Shown one piece after another: positions 200 through 55,442 of a DNA stretch of 64,000 bases. Each line of letters begins with the position of its first letter. Within the stretch, counting starts at the first letter, position 1. A program made the position numbers and the translations under genes. The stretch lies in sequence record OR493421.1; one strand, given 5' to 3'. The notes under the pieces were generated by a model. That model worked only from the letters and a program-made list of their open reading frames with translations. It was not told the origin of the DNA and did no database searches.

Positions 200-1465
200 T
201 TACAGGCAAGCACGTACGTAGTCGAGTTCGCCGTTGGCGATAGCCAGGCCCAGACGGGTCGCAGAGGTCGTTACAGAGGACAGAGCGGTCTGAGCAGCTT
301 TCACTGCGTTAACTGCTTTACCCACGTCTTCGCCGTCTTTGGTATCAGCTGCTTTCAGCAGGCCGATGATACGATCGCGTTTAGCCGCGCCATACTGCGC
401 TTCAACTTTAGAAGAAGCGATGGAGTCAACCAGAGCGTTGGCGTCGCTGATGTATTTTTTCAGGGCGTCTTTGCCATCGGTGACTTTGTGTTCGCCAGAG
501 GTTTTACCGCCGGAAACTTTCCAGGAGATGCGGATAGCTTTAGCAGCTTTCGCAACATCTTCGAAGGTTTCGACTTTACCAGCGTAATAACCGACCGCGA
601 TGGTCAGGCCACGCCACTGGTGAGCAGCAACGGCTTTGTCGCCGCCAGCTTTCTTAGCCGGCCCGAAAACAGAGTCCAGGCCAGCTGCTGCAGAGCTCAG
701 TTCTTTAACCGGACCTGCCAGCGCGGCGGCGTTACCCGGAGAAGACAGCAGAGCTTCAGAACCCGCTACCACTTTACCGGCAGCGCCGATCAGAGTGGAC
801 AGGCCGGTTGCAGATTTAGGCTGACCTTCGCCAACGCCGACAAACGCGTTCCATTTGCCCAGCTTGATGGTTTCTTTCAGTTTTTCGGTTTTTTCCAGGC
901 GTGCTGCAACAGCTTTCGCTTTGTTCTTAACCGCAGTGGCTTTGGAGAACAGGCCTTTGATGAAAGCGATCAGGCTATCCCAGATTTTCTTGATGAAAGC
1001 GATCGCCTGAGAGCCCCATTTTTTCACGGTGGCGCCCATGGCTTCCAGGCCTTCGCGAGCAGACAGTTCAGCGGTAGTCGCATCGAGAAGAGATTCCGCA
1101 CCCATAACCGGGACAGCGGTATCGCTCATTTTGGCGTTCAGTTTTTCACCGCGGGCGTACAGCAGGGCGAACGCAGCAGGGTTCCACTGGGTACCCGGTT
1201 GCAGGAGGGCTTCGGCGCCTTCAACGACTTCTTGCAGTTCTTCAACCTGCTCTTCCAGTTCTTCAACTTTGTCGCACAGGTCTTCAACGTCATCGGCGTG
1301 TTCTTCCAGTTCTCCGGAAGTTTCAGCGAGGACGTTTTCAGCAGCCATTTCAGCGATTTCTTCGGCCGACTCAGGAACGATTACAGCGGTATCGCCATTA
1401 CCCAGTTCGATTTCCAGGTTTTCGTTGCCCTGACGAGCCAGCAGATCCAGTAACAATTTACTCAT
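200..1465 (-). CDS. abundant internal head/ejection protein, phiKZ gp93 / SPN3US gp53-54 paralogue family
   Basis: Acidic N-terminal propeptide with many A/G-x-E sites (EGAEA, MGAES, REGLE), then amphipathic 'KKWGSQAIAFIKKIWDSLIAFIK' helix; strong codon bias; family by recall and synteny. Confidence 0.75.
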   Translation of the reverse strand: MSKLLLDLLARQGNENLEIELGNGDTAVIVPESAEEIAEMAAENVLAETSGELEEHADDVEDLCDKVEELEEQVEELQEVVEGAEALLQPGTQWNPAAFALLYARGEKLNAKMSDTAVPVMGAESLLDATTAELSAREGLEAMGATVKKWGSQAIAFIKKIWDSLIAFIKGLFSKATAVKNKAKAVAARLEKTEKLKETIKLGKWNAFVGVGEGQPKSATGLSTLIGAAGKVVAGSEALLSSPGNAAALAGPVKELSSAAAGLDSVFGPAKKAGGDKAVAAHQWRGLTIAVGYYAGKVETFEDVAKAAKAIRISWKVSGGKTSGEHKVTDGKDALKKYISDANALVDSIASSKVEAQYGAAKRDRIIGLLKAADTKDGEDVGKAVNAVKAAQTALSSVTTSATRLGLAIANGELDYVRACL

Positions 1466-52184: not shown

Positions 52185-52215
52185 AAAAAGTCCAGTAGGG
52201 CCGAACCCTACTGGA
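52185..52215 (-). terminator. intrinsic terminator ending the ribozyme/ncRNA transcript
   Basis: minus TCCAGTAGGG-TTCGG-CCCTACTGGA then CTTTTTT. Confidence 0.85.
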
Positions 52216-52383
52216 AGGAATAAAAATTCATGGTAGAACTTTAATGATGATGTGGCGATATTCATGAGATGATGTGATGGATCACCACACGAATTGGGTT
52301 GGGGTACTTAAAGGCACGACTCTTCTTTCCCCCTAAGTCGTAACTACTTCCGGCCCTAAGGTAGGTTGAGCGCGTAGCTCGAC

Positions 52384-52572
52384 TTATTCTTTCAGCTTAA
52401 AGTTCGTAATGCTAAACGAGTTAACGTTAGTAGCTTTATGAACCTCAGTGCGCAAAACGTCAAAGATGCGATTAGCGTTAGTGAGCAAACAGTCGGAAGT
52501 AATTTCTCCGCTGTAAGTCGTAAACACAGAATTAGGTATTCGGTATCGCACGGTATACTGGTATGTGTACAT
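52384..52572 (-). CDS. 62-aa hypothetical protein embedded in structured RNA region
   Basis: AGGAGG RBS with normal spacing, clean ORF. Confidence 0.7.
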   Translation of the reverse strand: MYTYQYTVRYRIPNSVFTTYSGEITSDCLLTNANRIFDVLRTEVHKATNVNSFSITNFKLKE

Positions 52573-52589
52573 AACGAACCTCCTAAGAA

Positions 52590-53242
52590 TTTACCCCATT
52601 ATCTCCGACTCCTCACGAAGAGAGAGATAACAGGTTATACTCTTGGGGAAGTTAACACTCAACTCAAACAGAGAGGTTATAACAAAAGCAATGGTAAAAG
52701 GCAAACGAAACGCCGTGGCAGAGGTTTCCTACTCGCCCCTTGGTGAGCGACAAAGGACGAATAGGCAATCATACTGCCGTAAGATTGCGAGGTGTGACCG
52801 TCTGAGATTTTGGAGTTCCTACGAAGCTGAGCAAGCTTCCCTTCGGACTCGGAGAACGTCGGGGGTTGGCCTAACCCTCAGAGATATCTCTACAATAACT
52901 CACGTTACCCGAATACGAAAGGCTGATTACTCCGGCCGGTTTCTTACCCGTAGCTAACCCGGTTTATCGCGGAAACCCCGCATACCGGTATAATTCGCTA
53001 ATACGACTTGCAGCCCTATCTTGGGCAGCGTCGTTTGGGTTGGGAAGAAACCCGCCTGAACCAACTTTCCGGCAAGCGACCAGACACGCTTCTTTCTCTC
53101 CCACTTTCGGTTGCTTATTGTCCGCTCGTAGAGTGCGGCACTCCTAATCATGAAAGAACTTTTTAGTGCGGGCAGGCGAAGAAGCTGAAGACCTCGGGGA
53201 CCATTGCCCCTAACTGCCCGTTCAACGCTTAGGTTGAATTAT
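52590..53242 (-). ncRNA. candidate large structured ncRNA downstream of hammerhead cleavage site
   Basis: More than ten hairpins, several needing G-U pairs that work only on the minus strand, a GUGA GNRA loop and long-range helices; no credible ORF. Confidence 0.65.
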
Positions 53243-53310
53243 GACCTAATAAAATAGATTCATTAGGTTTCGTCTTGTTTAGCGTCGAAGACTCATCAGA
53301 TAACACGACG
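53238..53310 (-). ncRNA. type I hammerhead ribozyme
   Basis: minus: GUUAU-CUGAUGA-GUCUU(cgacgcuaaac)AAGAC-GAA-ACCUAAUGAA(ucuau)UUUAUUAGGU-C/AUAAU; all core nucleotides present, GUC cleavage triplet. Confidence 0.92.
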
Positions 53311-53561
53311 TGAAGAAAAACGTTAATCTATCCCATTGAACAAAAACTTGTCTGTCACAGGAGAATGGCCGTCGCTACATGGCTAAGGACAATGGGTCTA
53401 ATAAGATTAACGAATAATGGGGATTGAACCCCCTGAAAATCTCTAGCTACTTTGGCTATCTCGCTCGTGGTAAGGAGGTTCAAAGAGATGAGGTTGGGTC
53501 GCTAGTTAATCAACAGGGAGTCCAAAGATCTTTACTAATAACATCACTCTGTCGTTAGGAA

Positions 53562-54356
53562 TTACTCAGGGTCGATGAAATTCACCTCAAGGGTTTGATA
53601 ATCCCCAATGGGGTTACTCAATAAAATCTGTTCGCCAGTAAAATACATTTCTGGCCACCCGATGTAATCCAGCAGAGCGAAAACCAGTTTTAAATCAAGT
53701 GGGATATTCGTATTGTCTTCGCCGACAACCGTCATGTGTCCAATAAGATTACCCGTCACGCTTTTGTCGTAATCCCGTATGGCTTTACGCCAACCACTGA
53801 CGACGTTAGACGACAGCAGGCTAAAGGGGTTACTTGCGCTACGGTCTCCTGGGAGGATTCGAATATCGTTATTGTCTACCCGAGCACTGAACCGACGGTC
53901 TAATAAAATATTATTCAGCAGTTCGTTAGCGTAACCGATCCCATTAGCGTCGAGGTCGATTAAGCGGTAGATACTCGGTTTAATTAAATCCTGGTGAGTG
54001 ACGAAAACCTGAGTCCCTCGGCTAATCGCGTGCTTCCAGCCTAACTCCACCAACAACTCGTGGACCTTACGAATCATGTCTGGGTTTTCCATCACGTTGC
54101 GAACGGTCAGTCGGGTTCCTTCAGACATTTCCAGGACTAATAAAATCTTTTTAGTCGCTATAAGATATCCGGGATCTCGAGGGGTTGCATTCAACGCATC
54201 AGGTAATTCTTGTAACAGGGATTCGTAACGATCAACACTTGCTGAGTCTTGTGATTTAACGTGCTTGTTGTTTTTCCATGGGTTAGCTGGTTGCATAGGA
54301 TATCGCCTCTTAGGGATGTTTCGGGTTAACTTTCGAACGGATGGGGTATTTGCCAT
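53562..54356 (-). CDS. hypothetical protein upstream of ribozyme locus (start uncertain)
   Basis: 264-aa ORF. Confidence 0.65.
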   Translation of the reverse strand: MANTPSVRKLTRNIPKRRYPMQPANPWKNNKHVKSQDSASVDRYESLLQELPDALNATPRDPGYLIATKKILLVLEMSEGTRLTVRNVMENPDMIRKVHELLVELGWKHAISRGTQVFVTHQDLIKPSIYRLIDLDANGIGYANELLNNILLDRRFSARVDNNDIRILPGDRSASNPFSLLSSNVVSGWRKAIRDYDKSVTGNLIGHMTVVGEDNTNIPLDLKLVFALLDYIGWPEMYFTGEQILLSNPIGDYQTLEVNFIDPE

Positions 54357-54419
54357 CTGACAATTCGAGATCTCTGTCCTGCTCAGAAGATTATGCTCTC
54401 CGTAAGATATTACTTTGCG

Positions 54420-55120
54420 GTTAAATCTTCTTGTCTCGATAAATCTAACTTGCAGTAAAAATTAATTATCTTGATTAAAATATTTTTATTCAGTGAATAA
54501 TCCTTCCTGAGAACTCGATCAGAACACCCTCTAAAAATTCCTGTATCGATTTCTAAAACGTTTTTTCATCCGACTGATACGAATTCCTAGGTTGAGTATT
54601 AAATCTTCTCAAAATCATTCCGGTTAATATTTTTTACTCTGTGTGATTTTTTCTGGATAATCTCTCAGGTTAAATCTTGTATTTTTATAACCCCTTCTCT
54701 ATTACGCGTGCGCGTGCGCACACACGCGCTGGCGCGCGCCTAATGAATATAAATATATATAAATATATATTTATATATTTTTTATAAAAACAAACTAATA
54801 AAATATTTATAATAATTTATATTAATATATTTTTAATAAATTAAAAATATAAAACCAAATGAAAATATAATACTACGTATTATATTTGTTTTTTATATGC
54901 GTGCGGGCGTACGCACGCGTAATAAGGACCCCTAGGAAAAATTGGATTTTTTGAGTATTAAAATTTTAGATTTTTTTAGATTTAGATTTTTGAAAATTGG
55001 ATTTGGAAAATCAAAACACAGAAAAATAAAAAACCCAGAACCGGAATCGGTTTTAGATTATCTTTGAAAAATTAGAATATCCGCGCACGCGAAAAATATA
55101 AATATAAAATAGATTTGTAT
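54420..55120. other. putative replication origin or other cis-acting DNA element
   Basis: About 160-bp near-pure A/T core flanked by 13-bp inverted repeat TATTACGCGTGCG (54700-54712 / 54912-54924), mirrored AAATCT/AGATTT motifs; lies between divergent genes. Confidence 0.55.
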
Positions 55121-55442
55121 GTAAAAATTTACCAATGACCAAAATTCCGAAGAAAGAATTTTCGGAGCGCTTGGGATTGTATGTCGGATTGATTCTTGCT
55201 CGAGTGAGATCATGGCAACTCGCCTTCGAGGAATTTTTCCGGAGGCGAGGTTTTTTCTGTGGGGTGTTGTCTTACGGCACGGAGTATTTTATACGGGAAA
55301 TAAAACTCAAAAACGTACGGGATCGTAAACCCGTTGAGTTTTTAAATTCCCGCAGTGAAATATTATAACCGCCGAAACCCCAGAGTAAAAATTCTCAGTT
55401 GAATTTTTATCGAGACGGAAATTTCTCCAGTCCCGAAACTCA

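Follow-up and report, generated by a model that had tools for sequence, protein, structure and literature searches.

Large RNAs that are structured and have no known function are seldom found, and every new class has so far brought unexpected biology to light. GOLLD and ROOL are phage-associated representatives whose function is unknown (PMC12286853), and a review of jumbo phages mentions non-coding RNAs for phiKZ only, and no ribozyme (PMC13282480). In phage DNA, type I hammerhead ribozymes occur between the genes of operons (Rfam clan CL00010), and RAGATH motifs place a structured RNA beside a self-cleaving ribozyme. Here we describe, on the minus strand of a 64,000-nucleotide (nt) stretch of record OR493421.1 (the window; all positions refer to it), a hammerhead ribozyme followed by a long non-coding RNA, which begins at the predicted cleavage site and lies upstream of a 62-codon gene and of the tubulin gene phuZ. 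The first 520 nt or so of this RNA (52720..53242, the core) combine low divergence, kept base pairs and the lack of a coding signal, and are very probably a new functional structured RNA.

Compared with GOLLD, ROOL and OLE, the window RNA is similar in its size class of several hundred nt, its many helices and its lack of an open reading frame (ORF). It differs in that it matches none of their models, is confined to one lineage of PhuZ-encoding jumbo phages, is poorly conserved in size and sequence between clades, and has a predicted ribozyme-made 5' end and a linked small protein gene. With respect to RAGATH motifs, the sole match was the hammerhead part of RAGATH-1, whereas the large RNA has no counterpart there. 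A large structured-RNA screen of IMG/VR (PMC10690425) could not have seen the window RNA, because IMG/VR holds no relative of it. We infer that it represents a new family of large structured phage RNA, outside the described families and specific to this PhuZ-encoding lineage.

Conservation and coding status of the core RNA

Over positions 52380-53570, Klebsiella phage YC1 matched the window with 100% identity, phages Miami, phiKp_32 and BUCTxx100 reached 99.7-99.8%, and KPN8 and Raoultella phage VB_ZK_P1 94%. These are all jumbo phages of ~252-257 kb in the genus Miamivirus, and the window is from a Klebsiella jumbo phage of this type. Among 50,697 phage records, blastn returned seven near-identical genomes as close relatives and no others. 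When IMG/VR, the JGI metagenomes and the GTDB genomes were scanned for motifs, one further close relative (L129) emerged; all other matches were unrelated hammerheads or chance matches within a coding gene. A PhuZ-based scan of IMG/VR produced no relative, and the E. coli genomes searched for homologues gave no match.

Divergence was compared for the genome pairs window/KPN8, window/VB_ZK_P1 and window/L132. The core (53242-52720) showed 10-12 differences in 523 nt (1.9-2.3%), and in the same pairs third codon positions differed by 8-22% in phuZ, by 10-14% in the 62-codon gene and by about 35% in a 264-aa gene farther upstream. The core, with a GC content of 0.50 (window, 0.44), changes five to ten times more slowly than silent sites of the neighbouring genes, loops being highly conserved as well as stems, and is under strong purifying selection at almost every nucleotide. 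The preliminary description of this locus had proposed an RNA of about 650 nt; for the constrained RNA this extent has to be reduced, as the following 130 nt (52719-52590) diverged by 14-16%, contained a 9-nt indel and, apart from one hairpin associated with the small gene, are near-neutral.

The RNA strand of 53242-52590 (653 nt) contains no ORF above 65 aa, in agreement with the earlier statement that the stretch lacks a credible gene. A 65-aa ORF on the minus strand gained stop codons in four relatives, and a plus-strand ORF of 104 aa, annotated in Miami and KPN8, accumulated 7-10 non-synonymous versus 1-5 synonymous codon changes. Judged by these changes, the ORFs within the stretch are not under selection at the protein level, and in Miami and KPN8 the small ORFs that the records place on the plus strand opposite the RNA may be spurious calls.

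Base pairing at the RNA level

When folded as a whole, 53242-52590 reached -232.8 kcal/mol with a z-score of -4.9, which none of 20 shuffles equalled; the plus strand gave a z-score of -2.4. In an alignment of ten sequences of the clade, the consensus fold contained 230 pairs. Three pairs showed compensatory double changes (52984/52963 U-A to C-G; 52674/52664; 52673/52665), 16 were changed on one side and one was broken; all 16 one-sided changes yield G-U pairs or restore Watson-Crick pairs. To avoid circularity, the window sequence was also folded alone. In the local helices of the minus strand all 12 substitutions kept pairing; in the plus-strand fold three pairs were kept and five broken. 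From these substitution patterns, the local helices are maintained at the RNA level and in a minus-strand-specific manner, which bears out the earlier assignment of the structure to that strand. The core RNA was thus found to be non-coding, under purifying selection and with helices kept at the RNA level, as would be expected for any large structured non-coding RNA.

The hammerhead ribozyme

The type I hammerhead (53238..53310, minus strand) comprises the catalytic core, three stems and a pseudoknot. It begins with the pseudoknot strand CGUCG (53310-53306), followed by stem I (53304-53300 with 53242-53238), the core CUGAUGA (53299-53293), stem II (53292-53288 with 53276-53272) enclosing loop II, CGACGCUAAAC (53287-53277), the GAAA element (53271-53268) and stem III (53268-53260 with 53252-53244). 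The sequence order is GUUAU-CUGAUGA-GUCUU-CGACGCUAAAC-AAGAC-GAAA-CCUAAUGA-loop-UUAUUAGG-UC/AUAAU, the slash marking the predicted cut between C53243 and A53242. The cleavage site is GUC with its C at 53243, and A53242 would become the new 5' end. All required elements (CUGANGA, GAAA and a U-H cleavage site) are there in the correct order, and a strict descriptor of core and three stems, applied to both strands of the window, recovered this site alone and nothing in 300 dinucleotide shuffles. The position, strand and predicted cut given in the preliminary description were right.

The hammerhead remained below the Rfam gathering scores, with 23.7 bits (E 0.031, in a permuted register) versus 48.5 for Hammerhead_3 and 19 bits versus 56.3 for the hammerhead part of RAGATH-1. 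Neither the long loop II nor stem III of the window ribozyme agrees well with the models. In ten close relatives, the catalytic core varied only at the free position N7 (U to C in L131, giving CUGACGA), and in stem I a single G to A change turned G-U into A-U. Across four phage clades the stems covary. Stem I shows GU, AU and GC pairs and also UA to CG (AUAAU/GUUAU in the window, AUGAC/GUCAU in L008), stem II reads GUCUU/AAGAC in the window and GCCUU/AAGGC in L149, and stem III shows AU to GU. The length of stem III varies among the distant phages, and the cleavage site of L149 is GUA. By nhmmer the hammerhead was linked to L008 at an E value of 9e-10. Loop II always contains (C/A)GACG and its complement CGUC(G/U) lies directly 5' of stem I; the two form a pseudoknot, and a comparison of the window with L008 shows them to covary. 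By its core, its stems and their covariation, the predicted hammerhead is genuine.

More than 119 stretches of IMG/VR contigs (L009-L127) carry type I hammerheads with a nearly invariant stem-loop II, UCUUUGAAAAUUAAGA, typically 30-60 nt upstream of a ribosome-binding site (RBS) and start codon, and some contigs hold two or three of them. As hammerheads with the same stem II are common in these phage contigs, the ribozyme itself is of a known kind. It shares with the phage intergenic hammerheads the full core, the three stems, the open stem I and the location between genes of a phage operon. In contrast to them, its scores lie below the Rfam gathering thresholds, its loop II of 11-13 nt pairs with the 5' flank, and the sequence behind it is conserved non-coding RNA over 350-650 nt, whereas the common ones have an RBS within about 50 nt.

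Elements within the core RNA

The first element of the core is the hairpin UCAAC-CUAAGC-GUUGA (53222..53237), which starts 5 nt after the new 5' end and is identical in the related contig L130. At the same position past the cut, L008 has ACGAC-UAACUGAU-GUCGU and L149 CCCGAU-UCG-AUCGGG. Further on, the hairpin CUGG-UCGCUUG-CCGG, followed by GAAAGUUG (53062..53084), shows the G-U-compatible change U53082C (U-G to C-G) in five relatives. This hairpin together with a GRAAGUUG motif is common to L008, L152, L149 and L151, with different stem sequences.

A domain at 52934..53056 is closed by a long-range helix, recognised as the inverted repeat GGCGGGUUUCUUCCC / GGGUAAGAAACCGGCC, and encloses a hairpin at 53034-53003 and the CCGGU/ACCGG-GCGG/CCGC hairpin at 52992-52955. 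In this domain, the compensatory U-A to C-G change at 52984/52963 occurred in three relatives, and there were further changes from G-C to G-U at 52971 and from U-G to C-G in L131. The 18-nt long-range helix (53056-53042 / 52949-52934) competes with the first GGGUU/AACCC hairpin, and one substitution in BUCTxx100 mildly favours the helix. In L008, the counterpart of the base of this helix closes a mere 18-nt insert (E 0.13).

The branched domain at 52823..52921 contains a GUGA-loop region, a GGGUU/AACCC hairpin, CCGAGUCCGAAGG and the hairpin GAAGC-UUGCUCA-GCUUC. Here one-sided, G-U-compatible changes were found at 52894 and 52852, and alternative pairings compete in the 52921-52801 junction; the motif GGGAAGC-loop-GCUUC is common to the window, L007 and L149. 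Near the 3' end of the core lie two hairpins in which changes keep the pairs (52788-52765 and 52764-52729): C52787U produces a U-G pair in the first, and the linked changes C52756U and G52736A in L128 and L131 keep two adjacent pairs in the second.

Most of the helices listed in the preliminary description are present. CCGGU/ACCGG is backed by the compensatory change at 52984/52963, GCGG/CCGC (also CUGG/CCGG) by G-U-compatible changes and the terminal UUAUCUC/GAGAUAA hairpin by covariation in other clades; ACGAC.../GUCGU and the second GGGUU/AACCC (52870-52856) are likewise supported. Two of the listed helices are contradicted: GUUAUA/UAUAAC is broken in five to six relatives, and in L128 and L131 UCGCUC/GGGCGA is disrupted by G52736A, whereas the alternative 14-bp hairpin 52764-52729 accommodates this change and the one linked to it. 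The idea that the new 5' end refolds after cleavage (AUAAUUC with GAAUUAU) is contradicted as well, because two independent one-sided changes, A52995U (KPN8, L129) and G52996A (L131), each break the pairing with no compensation at the 5' end.

As a side observation, the invariant core contains two perfect palindromes on the minus strand, AGAGAUAUCUCU (12 nt, 52890-52879) and CCGGCCGG (52930-52937), which could form hairpins or intermolecular duplexes. About 0.16 palindromes of 12 nt are expected by chance per 650 nt.

Counterparts in distant clades

Contigs of other clades (Logan, NCBI metagenomes) were found via the flanking proteins. L130 and L007, which come from one sample (SRR11192622) and encode a PhuZ that is 74% identical, carry a 13-mer that also lies upstream of the window hammerhead, the hammerhead, a first hairpin without any difference and a 3' part that has diverged; neither contig covers the middle of the RNA. 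In L008 (PhuZ 49% identical) the hammerhead is followed by only 350 nt, which are strongly structured (z-score -5.3). L149, L150 and L151 were identified via a distant homologue of the 62-aa protein (E 2.5e-10) and show the order hammerhead, about 530 nt, small gene and phuZ; L152 is a partial contig. The module of hammerhead, 350-650-nt RNA, small gene and phuZ hence recurs in at least four clades.

The clades share a hairpin ~5 nt past the cut, the hairpin with a UCGC-type loop plus GRAAGUUG, GGGAAGC-loop-GCUUC and the hairpin before the gene; lengths and most of the sequence differ. Distant-clade hairpins were out of register in the MAFFT alignment, so that cross-clade pair counts are not usable. 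Few shared motifs and very different sizes argue against a deeply conserved ornate fold, and from these comparisons the family is real as a module. An ornate RNA in the manner of ROOL, OLE or GOLLD, as envisaged earlier, is thus borne out in size class and in the lack of a family match and not in depth of conservation, the RNAs of distant clades having 350-530 nt and few motifs in common. In L149, a 185-aa gene was called at 740-1297 (minus strand), where it runs antisense to the hammerhead and the greater part of the RNA behind it; we suspect that this call is spurious.

The small gene and the surrounding locus

Downstream of the core, a fast-evolving linker (52660..52719) with the 9-nt indel contains a small hairpin (52675-52663) with two compensatory pairs. 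It leads to the conserved module AACCUG-UUAUCUC...GAGAUAA-UGGGG (52582..52647), just before the RBS. Counterparts with covarying stems occur in L007, L149 and L152. In all clades this hairpin stays with the small gene, 25-35 nt before the start codon, and is flanked by CCUG-UUA and UAA-UGG.

The 62-codon gene itself (52572-52384, minus strand) has a strong RBS and is located just upstream of phuZ (52052-51090). Its substitutions fall mostly on third codon positions, AlphaFold predicted a beta-beta-alpha-beta fold with a predicted local distance difference test score of 93, and homologues always adjoin phuZ, immediately upstream; on these grounds the gene is genuine. Pfam and PHROGs assigned no family or function to the flanking proteins, including the 62-aa protein. 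In Foldseek searches its best PDB matches were the archaeal/eukaryotic ribosomal proteins LX/eL20, at weak scores (template modelling score 0.6-0.7, E 0.03-0.7), and the BFVD matches were unannotated small phage proteins. The resemblance of the predicted model to LX/eL20 offers a mere lead towards RNA binding.

The 3' untranslated region (UTR) carries a stem-loop presenting CCUUAGGGCCG (52290..52383), which is shared with L007 (431-480) and L008 (1132-1175) and absent in L149. Its stem covaries (GCUAC/GUAGU versus GCAAC/GUUGU, a compensatory U-A/A-U exchange) and the loop has the consensus CCUUAGG(G/A)CCG. An intrinsic terminator with an 11-bp stem and a U tract (52191..52215) ends the 190-nt 3' UTR 140 nt before phuZ, and is conserved in L007. 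The CUUAGG of the 3' UTR is complementary to the CCUAAG loop (53232-53227) of the first hairpin after the cut. A loop-loop contact between the 5' and 3' parts is possible from this complementarity; it would have 4 bp in L008, is absent in L149 and may be due to chance.

Upstream, the locus starts with the 264-aa gene (54356-53562, minus strand), and 990 nt without a credible gene separate it from the 62-codon gene. After the 264-aa gene, the terminator scan found a weak terminator-like hairpin that forms an inverted repeat, GGGGGUUCAAUCCCC (53419..53433), the 5' half of which can alternatively pair with 53483-53473 and which has a longer U tract in L128 and L131. A tRNA-like reading of GGGGGUUCAAUCCCC was rejected, as ARAGORN finds nothing. 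Further towards the 264-aa gene lies the 13-mer ACCUCCUUACCAC (53467..53479), present at a single place in the window and similar to the 16S rRNA 3' end (the anti-Shine-Dalgarno sequence). It is identical in the window clade, L130 (about 1506-1518) and L008 (470-482); L152 (75-88) carries the related GAUCACCUCCUU in its place, and L149 has no counterpart. The pairing of this 13-mer was inconsistent among the predicted folds of three clades. A role of ACCUCCUUACCAC in sequestering the RBS of the small gene was also rejected, since five relatives have lost 1 nt of the RBS with no compensating change and the pairing is not conserved in L008. Beyond the 264-aa gene, an AT-rich gap of 1.1 kb between divergent genes (54357-55442, GC 0.33) contains tiny ORFs only, and parts of it fold far better than shuffles (54500-54799, plus strand, z-score -8.3).

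Known families and neighbouring genera

Rfam 15 gave no match at gathering score in the whole window. At E values up to 10, the region 52300-53700 yielded only the sub-threshold hammerhead and a fragment of the raiA-hairpin model (17 bits, E 3.9), and at E values up to 1, L008, L130 and L007 produced sub-threshold hammerhead and chance-level matches and no large RNA family. Covariance models did not place the RNA in GOLLD, ROOL, OLE, HEARO or raiA. The remark in the preliminary description that group I and II intron, RNase P, tmRNA and SRP cores could not be matched was corroborated by Rfam, which detected none of these and neither 6S RNA nor tRNA; an ARAGORN run on the window was likewise negative for tRNA and tmRNA. 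Both flanking ORFs are whole, separate genes with a stop codon and an RBS of their own.

Counterparts in position were sought among the closest PhuZ relatives. Aphroditevirus genomes contain an ORF-free region of 440-580 nt on the sense strand, directly upstream of phuZ, that ends in an intrinsic terminator (L004 5503-6000, L005 5363-6000, L138 863-1500, L139 861-1500, L140 1003-1500). It folds with z-scores of -5.7 to -7.9, shows compensatory changes in 22 of 140 predicted pairs among five phages and has no Rfam match; it has the look of a large non-coding RNA, so far undescribed, that belongs to jumbo phages of Vibrio/Photobacterium. Position, strand and strong structure are as in the window RNA; in contrast, it has no hammerhead and no small gene and possesses its own terminator. 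The 9-mer CGAGUCCGA shared with Aphroditevirus was dismissed as chance, as it is not kept in phiKT1019. In Erwinia phage RisingSun (L006 5345-5875), an ORF-free stretch upstream of phuZ also has its own terminator and a z-score of only -2.4, and neither nhmmer profiles nor the central-domain covariance model linked it to the window RNA. A second gap in RisingSun (2210-2823) folds at a z-score of -8.6. The more distant PhuZ phages Kc263, OBP, pEt-SU and N1M2 have only about 140 nt upstream of phuZ. The RNAs of Aphroditevirus and Risingsunvirus at the same position may support the window RNA by analogy only.

Discussion

In the mechanism that we propose, the minus-strand transcript would adopt a type I hammerhead fold, in which the CGACG of loop II and the CGUCG on the 5' side of stem I pair as a stabilising pseudoknot, and would cut itself between C53243 and A53242. 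According to established hammerhead biochemistry, the upstream product should then carry a 2',3'-cyclic phosphate and the downstream product a 5'-OH. The latter would begin 5 nt before a stable hairpin and comprise the ~520-nt multi-domain RNA, which an unconstrained linker of ~60 nt would join to the hairpin and RBS, the 62-codon gene, the 3'-UTR stem-loop and the terminator before phuZ. Cleavage would uncouple the core from the upstream mRNA, and the 5'-OH end next to a hairpin should protect the product from 5'-monophosphate-dependent decay. On balance, we think that the core serves as an RNA domain, a protein-binding scaffold or a regulator, possibly together with the 62-aa protein, and is not a simple leader. 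More speculative, and rather doubtful at present, is a new large-RNA class of PhuZ-encoding jumbo phages that would form a particle with the 62-aa protein or an RNA-only assembly via its palindromic loops, descended from an old phuZ-upstream locus that was also the source of the Aphroditevirus and Risingsunvirus RNAs.

Several results weigh against the proposed RNA domain or limit the case for it. In comparison with shuffles the whole stretch stands out, but its 300-nt tiles fold at z-scores of only -2.2 to -2.4, values similar to those elsewhere in the window, so that conservation and not folding energy is the strong evidence. In the single-sequence fold, eight minus-strand cases were broken. 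All eight fall within long-range helices by which the predicted global fold is closed; these helices are contradicted, so that the overall architecture is tentative. The three two-sided pairs are no excess over the 2.6 obtained from column shuffles (332/500), a thin covariation explained by full-length relatives that are 94-100% identical. The RNAs of distant relatives have only 350-530 nt. The covariance model built on the window clade's central domain (159 nt) recovers L008 only weakly (E 0.13, syntenic), with a 107-nt interior replaced by 18 nt, and both this model and nhmmer profiles miss the L149 homologue. Within the L149 clade, differences to L151 kept nine pairs of the predicted fold and broke 20, in an alignment with an indel-rich block. 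No homology was detected between the Aphroditevirus RNA and the window RNA by nhmmer profiles or the covariance model. Finally, the terminator scan finds none between the RNA and the 62-codon gene, which keeps a cis-acting leader under consideration, as the RNA may be the 5' part of the small-gene mRNA and not a free 650-nt species.

That the whole stretch is a long structured 5' leader of the 62-codon gene, whose mRNA the hammerhead would detach from the upstream cistron, as seems to be the case for many phage intergenic hammerheads, and whose structure would tune stability or translation in cis, is unlikely in our view, and of the alternatives it is the one that survives best. Besides the missing terminator, the co-occurrence of RNA and gene in every clade found speaks for it, as does the location of the sampled common phage hammerheads 30-60 nt upstream of an RBS and start codon. 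However, constraint at nearly every one of ~520 positions goes far beyond what known leaders would need for a 62-aa protein, constraint is weakest in the segment that borders on the conserved hairpin of the gene itself, and neighbouring genera have ORF-free, self-terminated RNAs at this position. We argue that the core and the small cistron are separable modules of one transcription unit, because the hairpin with its UAAUGG element stays with the gene, the linker is near-neutral and no terminator separates the two.

The conservation could also stem from a DNA-level element such as a replication origin, a packaging site or a cluster of protein-binding sites, and the very high conservation of loops in addition to stems and the perfect palindromes AGAGAUAUCUCU and CCGGCCGG would be compatible with that. 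We regard this as very improbable, as the substitutions are strand-asymmetric (a minus-strand G-U pair is an A-C mismatch on the plus strand) and the hammerhead directly upstream, the flanking genes and the terminator are all on the same strand. Just as improbable is that the models missed a known large RNA in diverged or remnant form, be it GOLLD, ROOL, a group I or II intron or an RNase P-like or SRP-like RNA: the weak raiA-hairpin match points in this direction, and GAGUCCGAAGGGAAGC bears a short resemblance to the SRP domain IV sequence, but Rfam 15 gave no match at gathering score in the window and chance-level matches in the region and its relatives, and no split host gene or homing endonuclease flanks the RNA. 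A decayed or unrecognised protein-coding region on either strand is hardly credible, for although database records annotate hypothetical proteins of 60-104 aa on the opposite strand (Miami, KPN8) and the 9-nt indel preserves the reading frame of the 104-aa ORF, the two ORFs change mostly non-synonymously or gain stops, overall divergence is far below the synonymous rate, and the ORFs are not retained in distant clades.

A core RNA acting as a domain, scaffold or regulator would be well accessible to experiments. The phages that carry it are therapeutic-type Klebsiella jumbo phages, growable and editable in laboratory strains, the RNA has only about 520 nt, its ribozyme-defined 5' end makes a mature species easy to detect, and the 62-aa protein is an obvious candidate partner. 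Should the RNA turn out to be essential or to act on the host, an RNA component would be added to the biology of tubulin-encoding, probably nucleus-forming phages; should it be a leader, it would represent an unusually elaborate phage example of gene control coupled to a ribozyme. In Vibrio phages, the covarying ORF-free RNAs found at this position suggest a wider RNA locus that has gone unannotated.

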